From sequence record OZ240615.1: a stretch of DNA of 64,000 bases. The stretch is one strand, 5' to 3'. The notes under the pieces are model-generated. The model was not told the DNA's origin. It searched no databases and saw only the letters and a program-made list of their open reading frames with translations. The first letter of the stretch is position 1. Each line of letters opens with the position of its first letter. The translations under genes and the position numbers were made by a program. Positions 17,875 to 38,444 of this stretch are shown in pieces.

Positions 17875-19398
17875 TTAGAAACGACTGTTCCCGCCCCAGC
17901 TAAAATTCGACAAAGCATCATCGATCGGTTTATCATCCATGGAGAACTGACTGTCTGCCAGCTCTTGGATAGTTGTCTGGAAATCGTTGGTGATTTTACT
18001 GGCGAGATCGAAATCGTCGGTTTTCTGTGGCGAAATCAGACCATCACAATACATCGGAATAACGTAGAGTTCCTCAGGTTGTCCGTCTAATGAAAGGTTG
18101 ATTTTAATGTCAGTAATTGCAGAACAGTCGATACTGCAAGTGACGATAATATTGCCGTTATGCGAGATCGGGTTTGCGACCTGATACTCAATCAGTTGTC
18201 GCACTGCGCTGATATTCGCGGACACGTTAGCACCGGGAATTAATGGTCTTTCCCCGTAAACCTCAACGTGCATTTCTCCGAGCGGATTATCGTTACTGAA
18301 CACTACCATCGCATCAGAAATGTGGTTAGTCATCAGGATACTGGGGACCGCCTGAGAAATAATACGCACCGCTACTGCCTCTGCGCCAGCGCCGCCCAAA
18401 CTTGCCCCACGACCACGTTCGTAGCTCTGATACCCGCGTTCTTCAACTTGTTTAGGGTTGATAAAACGAGTTACTGGCTCACCATGATACGTCTCAGGCC
18501 AATCTACCATCCTTGCCATATCGCGAAGACGAATGGTCCCTTCCTGATAAAAATCACACTCTTGCAGGAACTGAGTAAACAACGGATTATCTTCCGTTTT
18601 ACTCACGTTAACCGCGCCAGCTGCCAGCTCAGATTTTGACATCTCTTCCCCAGCGAAACTGGAATCCGGGTTCCATGAAGGTTGCTCCATAGTTTCCGCC
18701 AATACCCCTGCTTTCAGTACCGTAGAGATGTAGTCGGAAGCATTGTTCTCACGACGAGAACCCATTTTGATATCACCTACAAGATCTGCGCGAGTGTCGA
18801 TGATCTGATCACCACCGGAGTGATAACGTTGATAGTCGCGGATACCGACATCGTTAAAAATGTCGTGTGGACGAATAAGGCGTTCGCCTTTATCGCGGCG
18901 TAAGCCAACATGACCTTCACCACGACCACGACCACGAATGATATATTCGGAAGATTCGATACGAGGACGCAATACTCGGCCCCGACCCGTATCCAGAATT
19001 GTATCGCGAATAATCACACTGTTGTTGATAAACATCTCCATGTTATCGTCTAAATCCCCGCTGATCGTACTGACGCCGTTATAGTCAGTAAAACCTGTGA
19101 GGACCTGGCGCTGAGTGGTGCCGTTATAGTCCGAGATTAAAAAGGTGATAATAAAACTTAACCGTTTTTCACCCCAACCTCCCGGAATCTCGATCAACGA
19201 CCCACGTTTTGAGGTCATGGAGATAGCGTCATTAACCATGGACGATAATGTAATCGAATTGATATTTTTACCATGGTCTGTCGCTTTAAGAATGCGGTCT
19301 TTAACACCATTATCGAAATGGGTCGTAAATGAACTTCCGTACTGATCGTCGTAGTTAGAAGTAGTAAAGAAGATGGCGCTAATGACAGTTGGTTTCAT
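17875..19398 (-). CDS. picA: phage-nucleus protein importer PicA/Imp1 (phiKZ gp69-like)
   Basis: 507 aa directly downstream of the gp68-like gene; IPGGWGEKRLSF, LTGFTDY motifs; call rests on synteny and recall. Confidence 0.75.
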   Translation of the reverse strand: MKPTVISAIFFTTSNYDDQYGSSFTTHFDNGVKDRILKATDHGKNINSITLSSMVNDAISMTSKRGSLIEIPGGWGEKRLSFIITFLISDYNGTTQRQVLTGFTDYNGVSTISGDLDDNMEMFINNSVIIRDTILDTGRGRVLRPRIESSEYIIRGRGRGEGHVGLRRDKGERLIRPHDIFNDVGIRDYQRYHSGGDQIIDTRADLVGDIKMGSRRENNASDYISTVLKAGVLAETMEQPSWNPDSSFAGEEMSKSELAAGAVNVSKTEDNPLFTQFLQECDFYQEGTIRLRDMARMVDWPETYHGEPVTRFINPKQVEERGYQSYERGRGASLGGAGAEAVAVRIISQAVPSILMTNHISDAMVVFSNDNPLGEMHVEVYGERPLIPGANVSANISAVRQLIEYQVANPISHNGNIIVTCSIDCSAITDIKINLSLDGQPEELYVIPMYCDGLISPQKTDDFDLASKITNDFQTTIQELADSQFSMDDKPIDDALSNFSWGGNSRF

Positions 19399-19425: not shown

Positions 19426-20967
19426 TTAGGGTTTAGCAATTACGGAGCGTGTGTTGATAAAGATAATGAATTCCGCTAACAACTGCTTAAAGTTAGGCGG
19501 TACCATCATCCCACGATCGCCGTCTTCAATCATGGTACTTTTCTCAGCAATGACGTCTACGATGTCGCGTTGCCAATAGTTGTTCGCAAATTCATTGTAG
19601 AAAGCGTTAACGGCGATTTCTCCTGGTGTCTTCAACGAAGCTTTAGAACGGGCTGTTCCTAAAGTCGTGTAACGACGATACGGATAGATCTCATTGAAAA
19701 CGTTTAATTGCTCCTCTTTAATTTGGCCAGCATTAAAGATGGTTTGAATCCGTCCCTTTTGCGTGGCGCCAATTAAATCTGCTAATACAGAAAACCCATT
19801 TTGATGCAGATAGACTTGAGCGATCGAAATCAGACCAATCGCACCTGTCCGATCAGTATGTGGTAACGCACGCGTGACGCTGTGTTGATGCAATGTCACC
19901 GCTACCAGCTTTAACTGACATTCAATTGGATTAAAGAACTTACGGGCGTTATTACGGGAAATGACGGATACTAATAAACCCCGGTCATAATCGTCACCTA
20001 AAATACGACTGGCTTTATTACGAAGTTCATGAGCCCAATAATCAAAGGCAATACGCTCGCCGTCAGATATACTTTCTCTGACTTTGTAGCTCTCAGCCGT
20101 AGAAAGATTATCTTCCTCTCCTCCGGAATCTTTAACCATCGTTTTTGGACGTACCTCATCTTTACCGCTACGCCCGCCATCACTCGGGAGCTGAGTTTTA
20201 ATCGCGCTCCACATCTTACTGATCAGATTAACAGTTTCAATCTGGTCATCATCGTCATTGTGACTGAGTTGAATCACGGATAAACGACTTACCACCAAAT
20301 ATGCCAGCATCCATTCCGGGATATCGGCAGAACCAATACCAAAAATAATGTTCTTCATACCGGGCGTGGTTCCTGCCACCACGGCATCAACGAATTCCCG
20401 AAAGCGCTCCATCGGTTGAGATTCCATAATCTCAGTCCGCCGCAATAACTGTAACGCATAAATTTCTTTATTCGATTCAGCCATTGCCGATTCCATCGCC
20501 AAAAACTCAGTCCATACCGGCACCATCGCTTTCAAGGCAATCGACATATACGTCAACTGTCGGTAGTCGGGTTCCAAATAAGTCTGTTCTGGCCGATCGT
20601 CTTCCAGTAATGTTGTTTTCAAATCGGGCGGTAGGCGAATATCCGAATAATGCCGCATCCAGTGCTCAATTAACGCTAACGGAATAAAACGATACAGTTC
20701 GATAACGTCTTCGTTCACAAGACGACTTGTAGTGTTGAACTCGTAGGCGTTATCGAGTTTATCCCGGATATTGCGATAAGCAAGGAAAATCTTTTCTTGA
20801 ACGTCTTCGTCCAAAAAGGCGAAAAAACGATTAATGTCACGAAACGTTGTTTCGTTCCACGATAATTTTTTCATCTCCCAGAACAAAACGTCGTACGACC
20901 CGTGACCCATGCAAAGTACACGTGTTTTTGTTCTTCCGCCTAAACTTTCATCAAAATAAAATTGCAT
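19426..20967 (-). CDS. nvRNAP promoter-specificity (sigma-like) subunit, phiKZ gp68-like
   Basis: 513 aa; core-block position; TYLEPDYRQL...LKAMVPVWTEF, ESYKVRE motifs. Confidence 0.8.
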   Translation of the reverse strand: MQFYFDESLGGRTKTRVLCMGHGSYDVLFWEMKKLSWNETTFRDINRFFAFLDEDVQEKIFLAYRNIRDKLDNAYEFNTTSRLVNEDVIELYRFIPLALIEHWMRHYSDIRLPPDLKTTLLEDDRPEQTYLEPDYRQLTYMSIALKAMVPVWTEFLAMESAMAESNKEIYALQLLRRTEIMESQPMERFREFVDAVVAGTTPGMKNIIFGIGSADIPEWMLAYLVVSRLSVIQLSHNDDDDQIETVNLISKMWSAIKTQLPSDGGRSGKDEVRPKTMVKDSGGEEDNLSTAESYKVRESISDGERIAFDYWAHELRNKASRILGDDYDRGLLVSVISRNNARKFFNPIECQLKLVAVTLHQHSVTRALPHTDRTGAIGLISIAQVYLHQNGFSVLADLIGATQKGRIQTIFNAGQIKEEQLNVFNEIYPYRRYTTLGTARSKASLKTPGEIAVNAFYNEFANNYWQRDIVDVIAEKSTMIEDGDRGMMVPPNFKQLLAEFIIFINTRSVIAKP

Positions 20968-21001: not shown

Positions 21002-21029
21002 GTGATATATACACGAAAACAAATGGAAC
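21002..21029 (-). promoter_or_regulatory. putative early promoter for gp68/PicA operon
   Basis: GTTCCA-N14-TATATCAC. Confidence 0.7.
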
Positions 21030-21069
21030 CGAGTGAGTCCGCGGACTCACTCGGGTAACCCTATTTTGT

Positions 21070-21873
21070 TTACCAAGGAACGTCGTTATCGAAGTCGCCT
21101 TGCGCTGCAGGCGCTGAGGCCGGAGCAGAAGCCCCGCTGTTGTTATTCCAGCTATTTTGTTGAGACTGCTGACCACCGCCGTTCCAGTTCCCGCCACCTT
21201 GACGTTTCGCAAAGTTTTGTTGGTTCTGTTGTTTGTTACGATCTTTCGCTTCCTGGAGTTCCTGATCGGACATGTAACCCGCTTTTAGCATAGAGTTGAC
21301 ATGATCCCACCAGATATCGGCGCGTGCGCGAGCGGAAAGTTCAGATACGTAACCGTTAGTAAGAACTTCACCGGACGCTAAACGCAACTGTGTCATCTTC
21401 GGCGGAACAAAATAGAACTTGATATTGTCCCGACCTTTCATACTGAGACCGATAAAGACACCTTCTTGGTCTTTACCGACAACCACCATCACTTCGGTCT
21501 CTGGGCGATCCAGTTTTTTACCGAACATGAAAGTCGACATACTTTCCAGTTTCATGATGTTATCGGGTAGGCGACCCAACGCCGCGTCCTCGATAGCCAT
21601 GGTGATCATTCTGAATTGACTGATGGTAGGGAAGAAATCGATTTTCCCTTCTCGTCCCTGTTTACGCAAGTTAACGCCCATTTTGATATCGCGGACTTTA
21701 ACGTGGTTACCGTCAACTTTGTGATAACGGAAATCGACAAAAAGAAACGGTTCTTTGCCATCGCTGCTTGCAGTAGCGGGTGCACTCAGCCGGCAATCCC
21801 AGGCATCCATTGCACGTAACGGACGACCAAGGTCAAAGTTGTTATTGTAAGCCATAGCTAGCCTTATTTTCAC
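21070..21873 (-). CDS. chmC: ChmC-like nucleus-associated nucleic-acid-binding protein (Whirly-type; phiKZ gp67 position)
   Basis: two genes upstream of PicA; beta-rich core plus Q/N/G-rich tail; likely start MAYNN at 21855. Confidence 0.7.
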   Translation of the reverse strand: MKIRLAMAYNNNFDLGRPLRAMDAWDCRLSAPATASSDGKEPFLFVDFRYHKVDGNHVKVRDIKMGVNLRKQGREGKIDFFPTISQFRMITMAIEDAALGRLPDNIMKLESMSTFMFGKKLDRPETEVMVVVGKDQEGVFIGLSMKGRDNIKFYFVPPKMTQLRLASGEVLTNGYVSELSARARADIWWDHVNSMLKAGYMSDQELQEAKDRNKQQNQQNFAKRQGGGNWNGGGQQSQQNSWNNNSGASAPASAPAAQGDFDNDVPW

Positions 21874-21925: not shown

Positions 21926-22786
21926 TCAGAGCAGTCGTTTCAAATGCTCAGCGGTGTAACGGTCGCTCATCCAACCCAGATTTAGTTTGATTTTGTCTGT
22001 GGTGGTCATTGTGGTCCATTTAAACCGTTCTGCCAGTTCAAGGACTGCTTCACGAACAGCTTTGGGGTAACGCATAAAAAGAATGTTTCGATCTCCAAAG
22101 ACCTGAATGGTGAATTCGTTGAAAGGTATCCGTGGATAGAGTTTCCCGTCTGTCAGTTTAGTGTTCCATTGACTCTTCGATTTAATTGCACCGGAGTAGG
22201 ATTCGATCAATCGAAGTTGGGTGAACGCGGTGCGCGAGAGTAGATCAACGGGGTAATGCGTGAGAATTAAAGCTTTCACAGGTTCGCCTTTTAATTGGGA
22301 ACCTTTATCGAAGTCTAAATACTGACCAATCGGCCTGCGAAGTACCTCATCAATTACATTGTCCATGAGAAAATGATATGTCTTTTGTAACGGAGTTTTA
22401 GGTGTAAATAGAATAGCACCAGGGAAACGCCGTAAGAGATCTCCGTACTCTCGATGGTACAGTGTAACTTTGTCCAATTTCCCTTGTCCATATTGCAGGA
22501 TTTGTTGAAGTTCTTCCTCGAGGGTATCAGCAAATCCCACAACAGTTTCTCGCATAGTTCGGTTACTTTTATCTTGCCCTAACGCCGAGACTAATGCCTT
22601 TCGGTCTTCTCCGTCCAAAGCGTCGTAAATATTACGATACAATGTACGAGTGTTTATCCAGAGCCCGCCATAGCGTTTATTAGGCTCCAGCGTTTCCATG
22701 GCCAAGCTGGTACCGATGCTGAGCGGGAGTTCCCCTACCGCTCTGCGGGCAAGGATATCATAGACGTTCATGGCAAATTCCCTCAA
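21926..22786 (-). CDS. conserved core protein (phiKZ gp66 position)
   Basis: PLSIGTSLA, WINTRTLYRN, LTHYPVDLL, QVFGD motifs; synteny. Confidence 0.75.
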   Translation of the reverse strand: MREFAMNVYDILARRAVGELPLSIGTSLAMETLEPNKRYGGLWINTRTLYRNIYDALDGEDRKALVSALGQDKSNRTMRETVVGFADTLEEELQQILQYGQGKLDKVTLYHREYGDLLRRFPGAILFTPKTPLQKTYHFLMDNVIDEVLRRPIGQYLDFDKGSQLKGEPVKALILTHYPVDLLSRTAFTQLRLIESYSGAIKSKSQWNTKLTDGKLYPRIPFNEFTIQVFGDRNILFMRYPKAVREAVLELAERFKWTTMTTTDKIKLNLGWMSDRYTAEHLKRLL

Positions 22787-23012: not shown

Positions 23013-24134
23013 TTACTCCTCAATCAAGTCTTGTAAAAGTCGTAATGCGTGGTCAATTTTCTCTGATGGGATTTGTTCATTTTCCCAACGTTGTTTGAAT
23101 AACGGGCTGACGCTCGACGGTGTCAATGCAGTAAACTCATAGCGCTTTTGAGTAAAAGTACTACCCGTCGTAGTCGCGGTTTTCTTCCCTCGCCGTATCT
23201 CGGAAAGCTCTAACGCAGGGAATGTCGACTTAAGAATTTCCATCCACGGTAATACCGGGTCATCCGCCATAAATTCAATGCGTAAGGCCGACCCTTCAAC
23301 CAGATCGGTTTGTTGGTCAATAAGGTCGATTATTTCCGGGAAATCCAACCCTATGGCAGAAATAGTCCGATAAATTTTAGCCTTCGTATTAATTTTTCTT
23401 TTGAAATTAATTTCTTTTCCATTCAGAAACGTAATTTCAATAACACCCTTTGGCTCCTCTTCTCCGTGCCCTAATCGGTTAAGAGATCCTACCGAAATCC
23501 ATTTCATAAATCGGCTGTGATTGTGGATATGGCCGGATAGAATAGCCAGCGAGACCAAATCGCTCCATTTAGCAGCATCGTGTAATGCAGGAGAATGTAT
23601 CCCAGGTAATTGATAGCTGCATCCGCCATGTACAATTGCAATATCGACCTTTTCCATCCCTCTGGAGTGAATAAGATCTTTAACTTGTTGATAAGTTAAT
23701 TCTGCATTATGCGTCCATTCATCCGGGAGATAGAGAATGTTTATATCCCATTCCTCTAGATACTCAATGCTTAACGCATCGATATATTTCAACTTACACT
23801 CAATCCCTTCTCCGGTGTTAATAAAATCAAAGATTTGACTTTGCTTTCTATCATGGAGGTTCGTCCCTTCCAATACCCGCAACAAAATGTCCCACTTTTT
23901 ACAGTAACGAAGAAGATGTCGCGCGCCTTCCATGGCGTAGTAAATGTCAGGGTCATTGAAACTTACTAAGTGATCGAAGTAATCACCGGAGACGGTGAGA
24001 ATATCTAATTCTGGTTTTTCTTCCATGGGGTAGAGCCTACGGATGTCCGCTAACATCCGTGGTGATTTGGTTCGTTTATGGAAGAAGTGAATGTCGCTGA
24101 TGGCACCAATTGTGAGCTTTTTATCAGTAATCAT
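23013..24134 (-). CDS. Mre11/SbcD-like metallophosphoesterase nuclease
   Basis: SDIHF, GDYFD, GTNLHD, VHGG, GHIH motifs. Confidence 0.92.
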   Translation of the reverse strand: MITDKKLTIGAISDIHFFHKRTKSPRMLADIRRLYPMEEKPELDILTVSGDYFDHLVSFNDPDIYYAMEGARHLLRYCKKWDILLRVLEGTNLHDRKQSQIFDFINTGEGIECKLKYIDALSIEYLEEWDINILYLPDEWTHNAELTYQQVKDLIHSRGMEKVDIAIVHGGCSYQLPGIHSPALHDAAKWSDLVSLAILSGHIHNHSRFMKWISVGSLNRLGHGEEEPKGVIEITFLNGKEINFKRKINTKAKIYRTISAIGLDFPEIIDLIDQQTDLVEGSALRIEFMADDPVLPWMEILKSTFPALELSEIRRGKKTATTTGSTFTQKRYEFTALTPSSVSPLFKQRWENEQIPSEKIDHALRLLQDLIEE

Positions 24135-24681
24135 ATTCGTCCGGTTGAATTAGAGAAGTCGTTGTAGTTGTACTGGCTCCTCCCGGAATAGGTTCAATTG
24201 ACGTTTGCCCAGGGTAAGGATAGCCGCAATGGACGCGTATTTCATGTAAGCGTCGCTGCCACATTTCTTTGTCGATGGTATCCAGAGTCAAAGAGGCGTA
24301 AATCTTTTCACTCATTGCCTCCCCTTGTTTCCGTAAACGGTTTGTGATCGTTTTTATTTCCATGGTAATGGAGAATAACGAATGTTCGCCGCCAGAATAT
24401 TTAGGCTGAAAATCACCCAGAATAGGCGGGAAAATCCAGTTGATCACCCCTTCTGCATTATAGATAAAAACGGGCTTATTTCTTCCGAACGCGATGAGAC
24501 GTTCCCAGTCGTCTAACGCTTGTTGTTGTACGCTCGCTTCGGTATTAAAAAAGCGCGGAGCCCAGTTTGTCTCAAATTCTTTCATGCTTATTTTGCTCAG
24601 CATATCTGCGGAGTAGTTGATAACGTCGTTGAGATCTCGGGTTAAATCAACTTTAGTTAATTCAGGCGTTTTTTCAGTCAT
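24124..24681 (-). CDS. conserved hypothetical core protein
   Basis: overlapping start/stop in core block; FPPILG motif. Confidence 0.7.
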   Translation of the reverse strand: MTEKTPELTKVDLTRDLNDVINYSADMLSKISMKEFETNWAPRFFNTEASVQQQALDDWERLIAFGRNKPVFIYNAEGVINWIFPPILGDFQPKYSGGEHSLFSITMEIKTITNRLRKQGEAMSEKIYASLTLDTIDKEMWQRRLHEIRVHCGYPYPGQTSIEPIPGGASTTTTTSLIQPDEYDY

Positions 24682-37475: not shown

Positions 37476-38444
37476 TTAGAATTCCATTCCATCGCCTTGC
37501 GTGTCACCCTGAATAAAGCTCTGCACTGCGACTGACTTTTTATCCCTTGCCATCCGGCGTTGTTCAAAGTCGTCGTAGGTTTTACGGAGGTCCGTCAGAA
37601 TTTCATTCAAACCGTGAGTATGGATGAGGAAGTAAAGGGAATCTTCCCCTGACCGTTTACGTGAACCGTAGGTGTTGTAGTCAGCAGGAATAGTCCCGGT
37701 TGTGGGTTTATTGTCACCGTAAAGTTCCGCAACTGAGATGGGGGCGGTTACCTCCAATGCGTCTTCTCGGTCCTGGAAAACTTCCAACAGTCCCAGCTCC
37801 GGTCGTACGCCTGCGCCAATCACTGGGCGCGCCCAAGTGAGGACGTCTGCTGAATCGAGGCCGTGGTGTTTACCTGAATAGAGATCGAGGACTGCGCGAA
37901 TGGTGGCAATCATAATCGCATCGACTTCTGCATTACGAACGTTGTTTTCGTTACTTTCAAACGCCACGTTCGCAAACTGATTGTTTTTGATCGCGATATT
38001 ACGAATAGACGAAATAGTCTTCATCGTGTTTTCGGTTGTTTTCGCCGATTCGGTAGATCCCACTAAAAAGACCAGAACGGCTTTCCCTTGGGCATAGAGC
38101 CCCTCGATGAGTTTAGGGCCAATTACGGAGCCCGATCCACCGGACGCTGAAAAGATCAGGATGTTCAGTTCTGAAGGTTTGAGTTTCAGAAGAATGTCGC
38201 TGATACTACGATCGGTAACGTCATAGTTAGTTTTACGGATTTTACCCGCGCCATCAACCCCTTCCAGAAAATACCATTTATCTTGATCGACAACGGTGCG
38301 CTCAGAAACATTAGAACGGCTACCGTCAACGTAAGCCTCTCTTACGTTTGCCAGATCCGATAGATCAGTACGCATCAGCTTGGTGAGGATGTCAATTCCC
38401 GCCCCGCCGGCACCGTAGATAGTTACTGTGTTATTCGACGACAT
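37476..38444 (-). CDS. phuZ: phage tubulin PhuZ
   Basis: GAGGAG, DGAGK, tubulin signature SASGGSGS, GLDSAD, C-terminal GDGMEF knuckle. Confidence 0.95.
   Translation of the reverse strand: MSSNNTVTIYGAGGAGIDILTKLMRTDLSDLANVREAYVDGSRSNVSERTVVDQDKWYFLEGVDGAGKIRKTNYDVTDRSISDILLKLKPSELNILIFSASGGSGSVIGPKLIEGLYAQGKAVLVFLVGSTESAKTTENTMKTISSIRNIAIKNNQFANVAFESNENNVRNAEVDAIMIATIRAVLDLYSGKHHGLDSADVLTWARPVIGAGVRPELGLLEVFQDREDALEVTAPISVAELYGDNKPTTGTIPADYNTYGSRKRSGEDSLYFLIHTHGLNEILTDLRKTYDDFEQRRMARDKKSVAVQSFIQGDTQGDGMEF

Follow-up and report, generated by a model that had tools for sequence, protein, structure and literature searches.

The window analysed here, a stretch of 64,000 nucleotides from sequence record OZ240615.1, encodes the ChmC/Imp6 ortholog of an FBKp24-like nucleus-forming Klebsiella jumbo phage, and the extreme C-terminus of this protein carries a conserved tip, DFDNDVPW, that resembles the tip of bacterial SSB. 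By analogy with SSB, we lean towards the view that the tip acts as an SSB-Ct-type docking peptide, either for ChmC itself or for phage-encoded partners.

The identity of the protein is supported by several kinds of comparison. It is 100% identical to ChmC of the Klebsiella phages FBKp24 and Centimanus, and the enterobacterial clade to which it belongs aligns by hhalign with the Pseudomonas ChmC set (PhiPA3, PhiKZ and 201phi2-1) at a probability of 99.4% (E 2.2e-21, 185 columns). A distant homolog, P0016 (29% identical, word search), matches by tblastn PhiKZ gp67, PhiPA3 gp61, 201phi2-1 gp123 and Goslar gp176, which are the proteins named ChmC (PMC11077065) and Imp6 (bioRxiv 10.1101/2024.03.27.586873); PhiKZ gp67 also matches the window protein directly (tblastn, E 6e-4). 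PhiKZ gp55, gp65, gp66, gp67, gp68, gp69, gp70, gp71, gp73 and gp74 have collinear tblastn matches on the minus strand of the window, in which the conserved order gp65 (SbcD-like), gp66, ChmC, gp68 (nvRNAP) and gp69 (Imp1/PicA) is found. The hhalign match, this collinear PhiKZ block and the Whirly fold described below bear out the label "ChmC-like" that a preliminary description of the sequence had given to the protein. A Pfam search gave no match at E up to 1, a sequence search of the PDB returned only spurious low-complexity matches, and the PHROGs match, phrog_3284, is a family of unknown function. Two GenBank annotations look wrong: the ChmC homolog in phage MJ359 of Klebsiella appears as "attachment protein" (PQ182779.1), and in Serratia phage PCH45 the gp66 homolog adjoining ChmC goes under "unclassified head-tail protein" (MN334766.1).

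Two of the neighbouring genes (Table 1) have published connections with ChmC: PhiPA3 gp62, the homolog of the gp68-like neighbour, was co-purified with ChmC, and Imp1/PicA is the only direct binder of ChmC/Imp6 to have been published (bioRxiv 10.1101/2024.03.27.586873). Elsewhere on the minus strand of the window, a 185-aa ORF beside the SbcD-like gene (24124-24681) finishes in a short run rich in Thr followed by ...LIQPDEYDY, an end both acidic and aromatic and a possible tail motif, but without a D-x-P-aromatic tip, and a 322-aa ORF (37476-38444) ends in ...QGDTQGDGMEF, which is acidic with a terminal Phe.

Table 1. Features of the chmC/imp6 locus and its neighbours in the window
Feature	Coordinates	Strand	Evidence or remarks
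PhiKZ gp69 homolog (Imp1/PicA nuclear import factor)	17875..19398	-	tblastn E 2e-32; phrog_3141
PhiKZ gp68 homolog (non-virion RNA polymerase subunit), downstream neighbour	19426..20967	-	tblastn E 2e-35; phrog_3209
Terminator-like hairpin	21029..21054	-	begins 15 nt past the chmC stop; consensus scan and fold
chmC/imp6 CDS	21070..21855	-	261 aa from ATG 21855 (probable start); stop TAA 21070-21072
Tip DFDNDVPW, SSB-Ct-like short linear motif	21073..21096	-	residues 260-267
Disordered Gly/Asn/Gln/Ser/Ala-rich linker	21097..21198	-	residues 226-259; low pLDDT, hypervariable
Whirly-fold nucleic-acid-binding core	21199..21837	-	residues 13-225; AlphaFold2 model and structure matches
PhiKZ gp66 homolog, upstream neighbour	21926..22786	-	tblastn E 3e-29; phrog_3229

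The longest chmC reading frame (21070..21873, minus strand) opens at GTG 21873 and gives 267 aa in the ORF translation, and residue numbers in this text refer to this frame. The true start is probably the ATG at 21855, because AAGG lies 7 nt upstream of it (21862-21865) and this start is common to all homologs; the six residues that the 267-aa reading has ahead of this ATG (21855-21873, minus strand) are likely untranslated. The hairpin beyond the stop codon consists of an 11-bp perfect stem, a tetraloop and a U-rich tail, and folds at -30.3 kcal/mol (z -3.5), with none of 200 shuffles equally stable. It precedes the gp68-like nvRNAP gene, an arrangement that fits expression of chmC far above that of its downstream neighbour.

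An AlphaFold2 model of the window protein, for which 17 sequences were used, is confident from about residue 20 to residue 225 (core pLDDT 78-96), and the core as modelled is a Whirly/PUR-type fold. Its best structure matches by VIA-align are StWhy2 (Z 8.9), PBF-2 (8.6), MRP1/2 (7.8) and Pur-alpha (6.4), followed by the next match at 4.8, and Foldseek likewise places only Whirly/PUR folds at the top, with weak scores (best E 2.8e-3). The linker is disordered (pLDDT <50); the tip is modelled somewhat more confidently (pLDDT about 56) and includes a short helix over 261-264. ChmC proteins are known to have 50-70 disordered, N/G-rich residues at the C-terminus, and pLDDT and composition indicate such a region in the window protein too; the linker contains G8 N6 A6 Q5 S5, as against G17 Q11 P9 A6 in the linker of E. 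coli SSB. The net charge of ChmC is +4 to +9 in the core and -3 to -4 in the last 12 residues.

The protein ends ...QGGGNWNGGGQQSQQNSWNNNSGASAPASAPAAQG-DFDNDVPW-stop, exactly as the preliminary description had read it, with a linker followed by the tip and the stop codon. Conservation of the tip was surveyed in 35 ChmC sequences, namely 17 homologs and 18 named orthologs; the latter were taken from GenBank phage records since a search of viral contigs for related loci gave only three ChmC and two PicA loci. When the C-termini are aligned across homologs, a check that had been suggested for this observation, the tip is found to be kept in these 35 sequences, which come from phages of at least eight host genera. 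Among the 17 homologs, with identities down to 29%, D262, D264 and P266 are invariant and F261 is nearly so, and the linker is rich in substitutions and indels. In this set the tip has a mean pairwise identity of 0.64, compared with 0.51 in the core and 0.31 in the linker, and the corresponding values for the 14-member enterobacterial clade are 0.71, 0.62 and 0.33. Across all 35 sequences, a hydrophobic or aromatic residue is always present in the last two positions, and at least two of the last nine residues are acidic in 33; Pro occupies position -2 in 23 and falls within the last four residues in 29.

The tips are fixed within clades and different between clades. Erwinia phage PhiEaH1 has DFDSDIPF and the enterobacterial-phage homolog P0015 has DFDNDIPF; further tips are YDEDIPF (PCH45), FDDTLPF (SPLA10), SEDLPF (FLC9), SDDIPW (RP31 and FLC4-3B), DDDIPM (LucasX), FDDDVPL (DT01), DDLPDSF (Xoo-sp14), FDEDMPSF (PhiKZ), FDDEIPNF (PhiPA3), FDSVPDFG (Phabio), FGD[VA]MAF (Psa21 and RVTF4), DFDDFVM (Noxifer), VAFDGLAF (Goslar), ELASFDW (201phi2-1) and YDDDVWG (Eowyn). 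A terminal W is found throughout the Klebsiella/Serratia clade, and outside it the end varies: some tips finish in M or L, PhiKZ and PhiPA3 have P-x-F, and coliphage Goslar lacks Pro. Degenerate tips without Pro occur in several lineages (Goslar, 201phi2-1, Psa21, Noxifer and Eowyn), which speaks against docking. Whole-genome counts were made on the FBKp24 record, which is near-identical to the window: among its 858 ORFs of at least 60 aa, eight have an aromatic end with at least three acidic residues in the last 10, and among these only ChmC combines Pro at -2 with a long low-complexity linker ahead of its end. Judged from these alignments, the ChmC tip acts like a short linear motif under purifying selection and is more constrained than the folded core, and it is probably the handle by which ChmC holds partner proteins.

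E. coli SSB (MG1655) ends ...QQSAPAAPSNEPPMDFDDDIPF, in which a Gly/Gln/Pro-rich linker leads to the tip DFDDDIPF. Without gaps, DFDNDVPW is identical to this tip at five of eight positions and has a terminal W instead of F. The linker and tip arrangement of bacterial SSB is present in ChmC and conserved, which upholds the SSB-like layout proposed in the preliminary description. Bacterial SSB (PF00436) and ChmC both have an oligomeric core that binds single strands, a low-complexity disordered linker and an acidic Pro-aromatic tip at the C-terminus. Tail-dependent condensates have also been published for each of them, and condensation of E. coli SSB requires the linker and is enhanced by contacts between the tip and the OB fold (10.1101/797431). 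However, the ChmC core is of the Whirly type whereas that of SSB is an OB fold, and ChmC has no Pfam SSB match; ChmC therefore lies outside the SSB family, and the likeness is one of the tail and the overall layout. In blastp with composition-based statistics, the tail of E. coli SSB has no significant similarity to ChmC tails; end-to-end matches (about 28-46% identity) are obtained only if composition is left uncorrected, and shuffle z-scores for the linkers alone are mixed (0.1-5.3). The ChmC tail may have been captured from an SSB gene or may be convergent.

The bacterial tip varies far less than that of the phages, being exactly DFDDDIPF in 74 of 80 SSB loci (Enterobacterales, Vibrionales, Aeromonadales and others). 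The six loci with other ends are divergent or truncated copies: five (L076, L098, L102, L115 and L123) are SSB relatives ending ...A[IL][YH][AGS][IL][SL], and the sixth (L091) stops early at ...SAPATV; all six may be accessory SSB copies. The ChmC tips that have been studied (FDEDMPSF, FDDEIPNF, VAFDGLAF and ELASFDW) are less SSB-Ct-like than the F-D-N-D-V-P-W of the window clade. In the ChmC papers searched, the tip is never called SSB-like and the term "SSB" occurs 0 times, and a literature search found no paper relevantly pairing ChmC with SSB.

Other nucleic-acid-binding proteins offer further comparisons. The best structural likeness to ChmC is that of plant Whirly proteins (StWhy2 and PBF-2/Why1) and T. 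brucei MRP1/2, with Z from 8.9 to 7.8 at sequence identities of only 7-11%. Plant Whirly proteins are tetrameric ssDNA binders with an SSB-like part in organellar genome maintenance, and they possess an acidic/aromatic autoregulatory motif at the C-terminus. In the phage SSBs T7 gp2.5 and T4 gp32, an acidic tail covers the surface with which the same protein binds nucleic acid and also makes contact with partners. The RNA chaperone Hfq has an acidic tail too, by which its RNA-binding face is autoregulated (PMC5606850). These three proteins share an acidic tail with ChmC, but their folds are unrelated and the comparison implies no D-x-P-aromatic tip of the bacterial SSB type.

Published work has shown ChmC of PhiPA3 to form homotetramers, which bind ssRNA at 58 nM and, less tightly, ssDNA at 184 nM; its C-terminal region has been described as N/G-rich and then S/D/E-rich, the latter part being an "electronegative cluster", and deletion of the region abolishes ChmC condensates (PMC11077065). 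The published deletions took away linker and tip together, never separately. ChmC is among the most abundant early proteins, is partly cytoplasmic in PhiPA3, and was detected when UvsX, the nuclear recombinase, was used for proximity labelling; a ChmC pulldown, in the part that is quoted, names ribosomal proteins and host RNA polymerase and no SSB partner. In Goslar, ChmC forms puncta in and on the phage nucleus, and its knockdown gives small nuclei with less DNA. When Goslar ChmC is supplied without its C-terminal region, the nucleus still grows but the titre is not rescued, and the region is therefore essential; puncta of the truncated protein nevertheless persist along the nuclear perimeter, which makes the tail an improbable anchor to Imp1 or the shell in this phage. 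PhiKZ gp67 (Imp6), which tolerates no transposon insertions, binds Imp1 directly at about 2:1 in a complex stable on gel filtration (bioRxiv 10.1101/2024.03.27.586873), and given this gel-filtration-stable 1:2 complex the Imp1:Imp6 contact looks more like one mediated by the core. ChmC/Imp6 belongs to the Imp system, which imports a host topoisomerase. When GFP-tagged Rhc (RNase H-clamp), which is a subunit of the DNA polymerase, is pulled down, ChmC comes with it, as do subunits of nvRNAP and DNA polymerase, although co-purification of ChmC with polymerases could be due to bridging by RNA or DNA; in a published AlphaFold2 screen that paired PhiKZ Rhc with every PhiKZ protein, gp67 is not listed.

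Docking by the tip and the identity of its partners are both inferred. The motif, which in this clade takes the form F-D-x-D-[VILM]-P-W at the extreme C-terminus, would be presented as a tethered tip whose acidic residues, Pro, terminal aromatic and free carboxylate could fit a hydrophobic pocket with a basic rim. One candidate for this pocket is the positively charged nucleic-acid-binding face of ChmC itself, reached in cis or between tetramers; such self-docking could lead to autoinhibition, to competition with RNA or ssDNA, and to the multivalency behind condensates, as in SSB and Hfq. Phage-encoded nuclear factors would be the other kind of partner and would be brought by the tip to ChmC-coated single strands, the candidates being the Rhc-DNA polymerase complex, the non-virion RNA polymerase, Imp1/PicA, and recombination or nuclease proteins. 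A 559-aa open frame of FBKp24 with an N-terminal RNase HI domain (G001:C1:274210-274845, minus strand; PF00075, E 2e-20) is presumably the ortholog of Rhc. In E. coli, RNase HI binds the SSB-Ct, and the Rhc-like frame is for this reason a candidate partner of the tip.

The S/D/E-rich end of ChmC has been read in the literature as a generic electronegative cluster, and the loss of condensates upon C-terminal deletion (PMC11077065) agrees with a tail whose charge serves solubility, lowers non-specific RNA binding and tunes condensates with no pocket or partner involved; acidic residues also persist in the degenerate tips of some lineages. We regard this explanation as unlikely, in that the window tip has only three acidic residues in eight, that F261, P266 and the terminal aromatic are among the invariant or near-invariant positions, and that a hydrophobic residue in the last two positions is common to the whole survey. 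A need for charge would neither pin the motif to the C-terminus nor conserve it above the folded domain. Since the most conserved residues of the tip include F, P and W/F besides the charges, a pocket is favoured over a generic acidic cluster. It is very improbable that the tail is a low-complexity sequence with a chance resemblance to SSB and no function: the blastp result obtained with composition-based statistics is what such a resemblance would give, but the tip is conserved across the 35 sequences and their host genera, such an end occurs in one of the 858 FBKp24 ORFs, and the C-terminal region is essential in Goslar.

The partner might also belong to the host. If the tip mimicked that of host SSB, it would dock in the SSB-Ct pockets of enzymes such as ExoI, RecQ, PriA, Pol III chi, RNase HI, Ung and topoisomerases, which would then be titrated from host SSB or recruited to the phage nucleus, the recruitment version being suggested by the binding of ChmC/Imp6 to the importer Imp1. 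The tips of enterobacterial phages are chemically near-identical to the host DFDDDIPF (PhiEaH1, P0015 and the window), and both the great abundance of ChmC, with its partly cytoplasmic location in PhiPA3, and the import of a host topoisomerase by the Imp system agree with mimicry. However, ChmC tips drift between clades whereas the host tip is constant in nearly all loci, Goslar ChmC is intranuclear, where most host proteins are excluded, and the quoted part of the ChmC pulldown list is without an SSB partner; host mimicry thus appears quite unlikely. The contrast between a frozen host tip and clade-drifting ChmC tips favours docking onto ChmC itself or onto co-evolving partners on the phage side.

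Docking of the tip onto ChmC or phage partners would bear on a gap in the replication machinery of these phages. In phiKZ-like phages no SSB has been found, and non-orthologous displacement has been suggested (Kazlauskas et al. 2016, PMC4889955); the FBKp24 genome likewise has no match to the SSB families PF00436, PF08804 or PF10991. It is plausible that ChmC serves as a phage analogue of SSB. A bolder proposal, which we put forward only tentatively and hold to be rather doubtful, is that ChmC is the long-missing SSB of phiKZ-like phages (Chimalliviridae), a Whirly tetramer that replaced the OB-fold SSB non-orthologously and uses the tip as a recruitment hub. If this were true, the ChmC tip would recruit the Rhc-DNA polymerase, UvsX, an SbcCD-like nuclease and the non-virion RNA polymerase in the phage nucleus, and the recruitment would be to ssDNA and nascent RNA, on top of the published role of ChmC in mRNA biology.

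Nucleus-forming phages conserve ChmC/Imp6, an essential and abundant protein whose assigned roles are in mRNA export, protein import and the formation of condensates. The analysis contributes the contrast between host and phage tips in their variation, the conservation of the protein region by region, and the placing of the ChmC tip in the context of the missing SSB and of the published deletions and interactions. Reading the end of ChmC as an SSB-type tip would provide a precise and cheap experimental handle of eight residues, and it would join two questions, namely why no SSB has been found in phiKZ-like phages and what the essential C-terminal region does for ChmC apart from condensation. 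Should the pockets of host SSB partners accept the tip as well, it may represent a new route by which these phages recruit or neutralise the DNA enzymes of their host.
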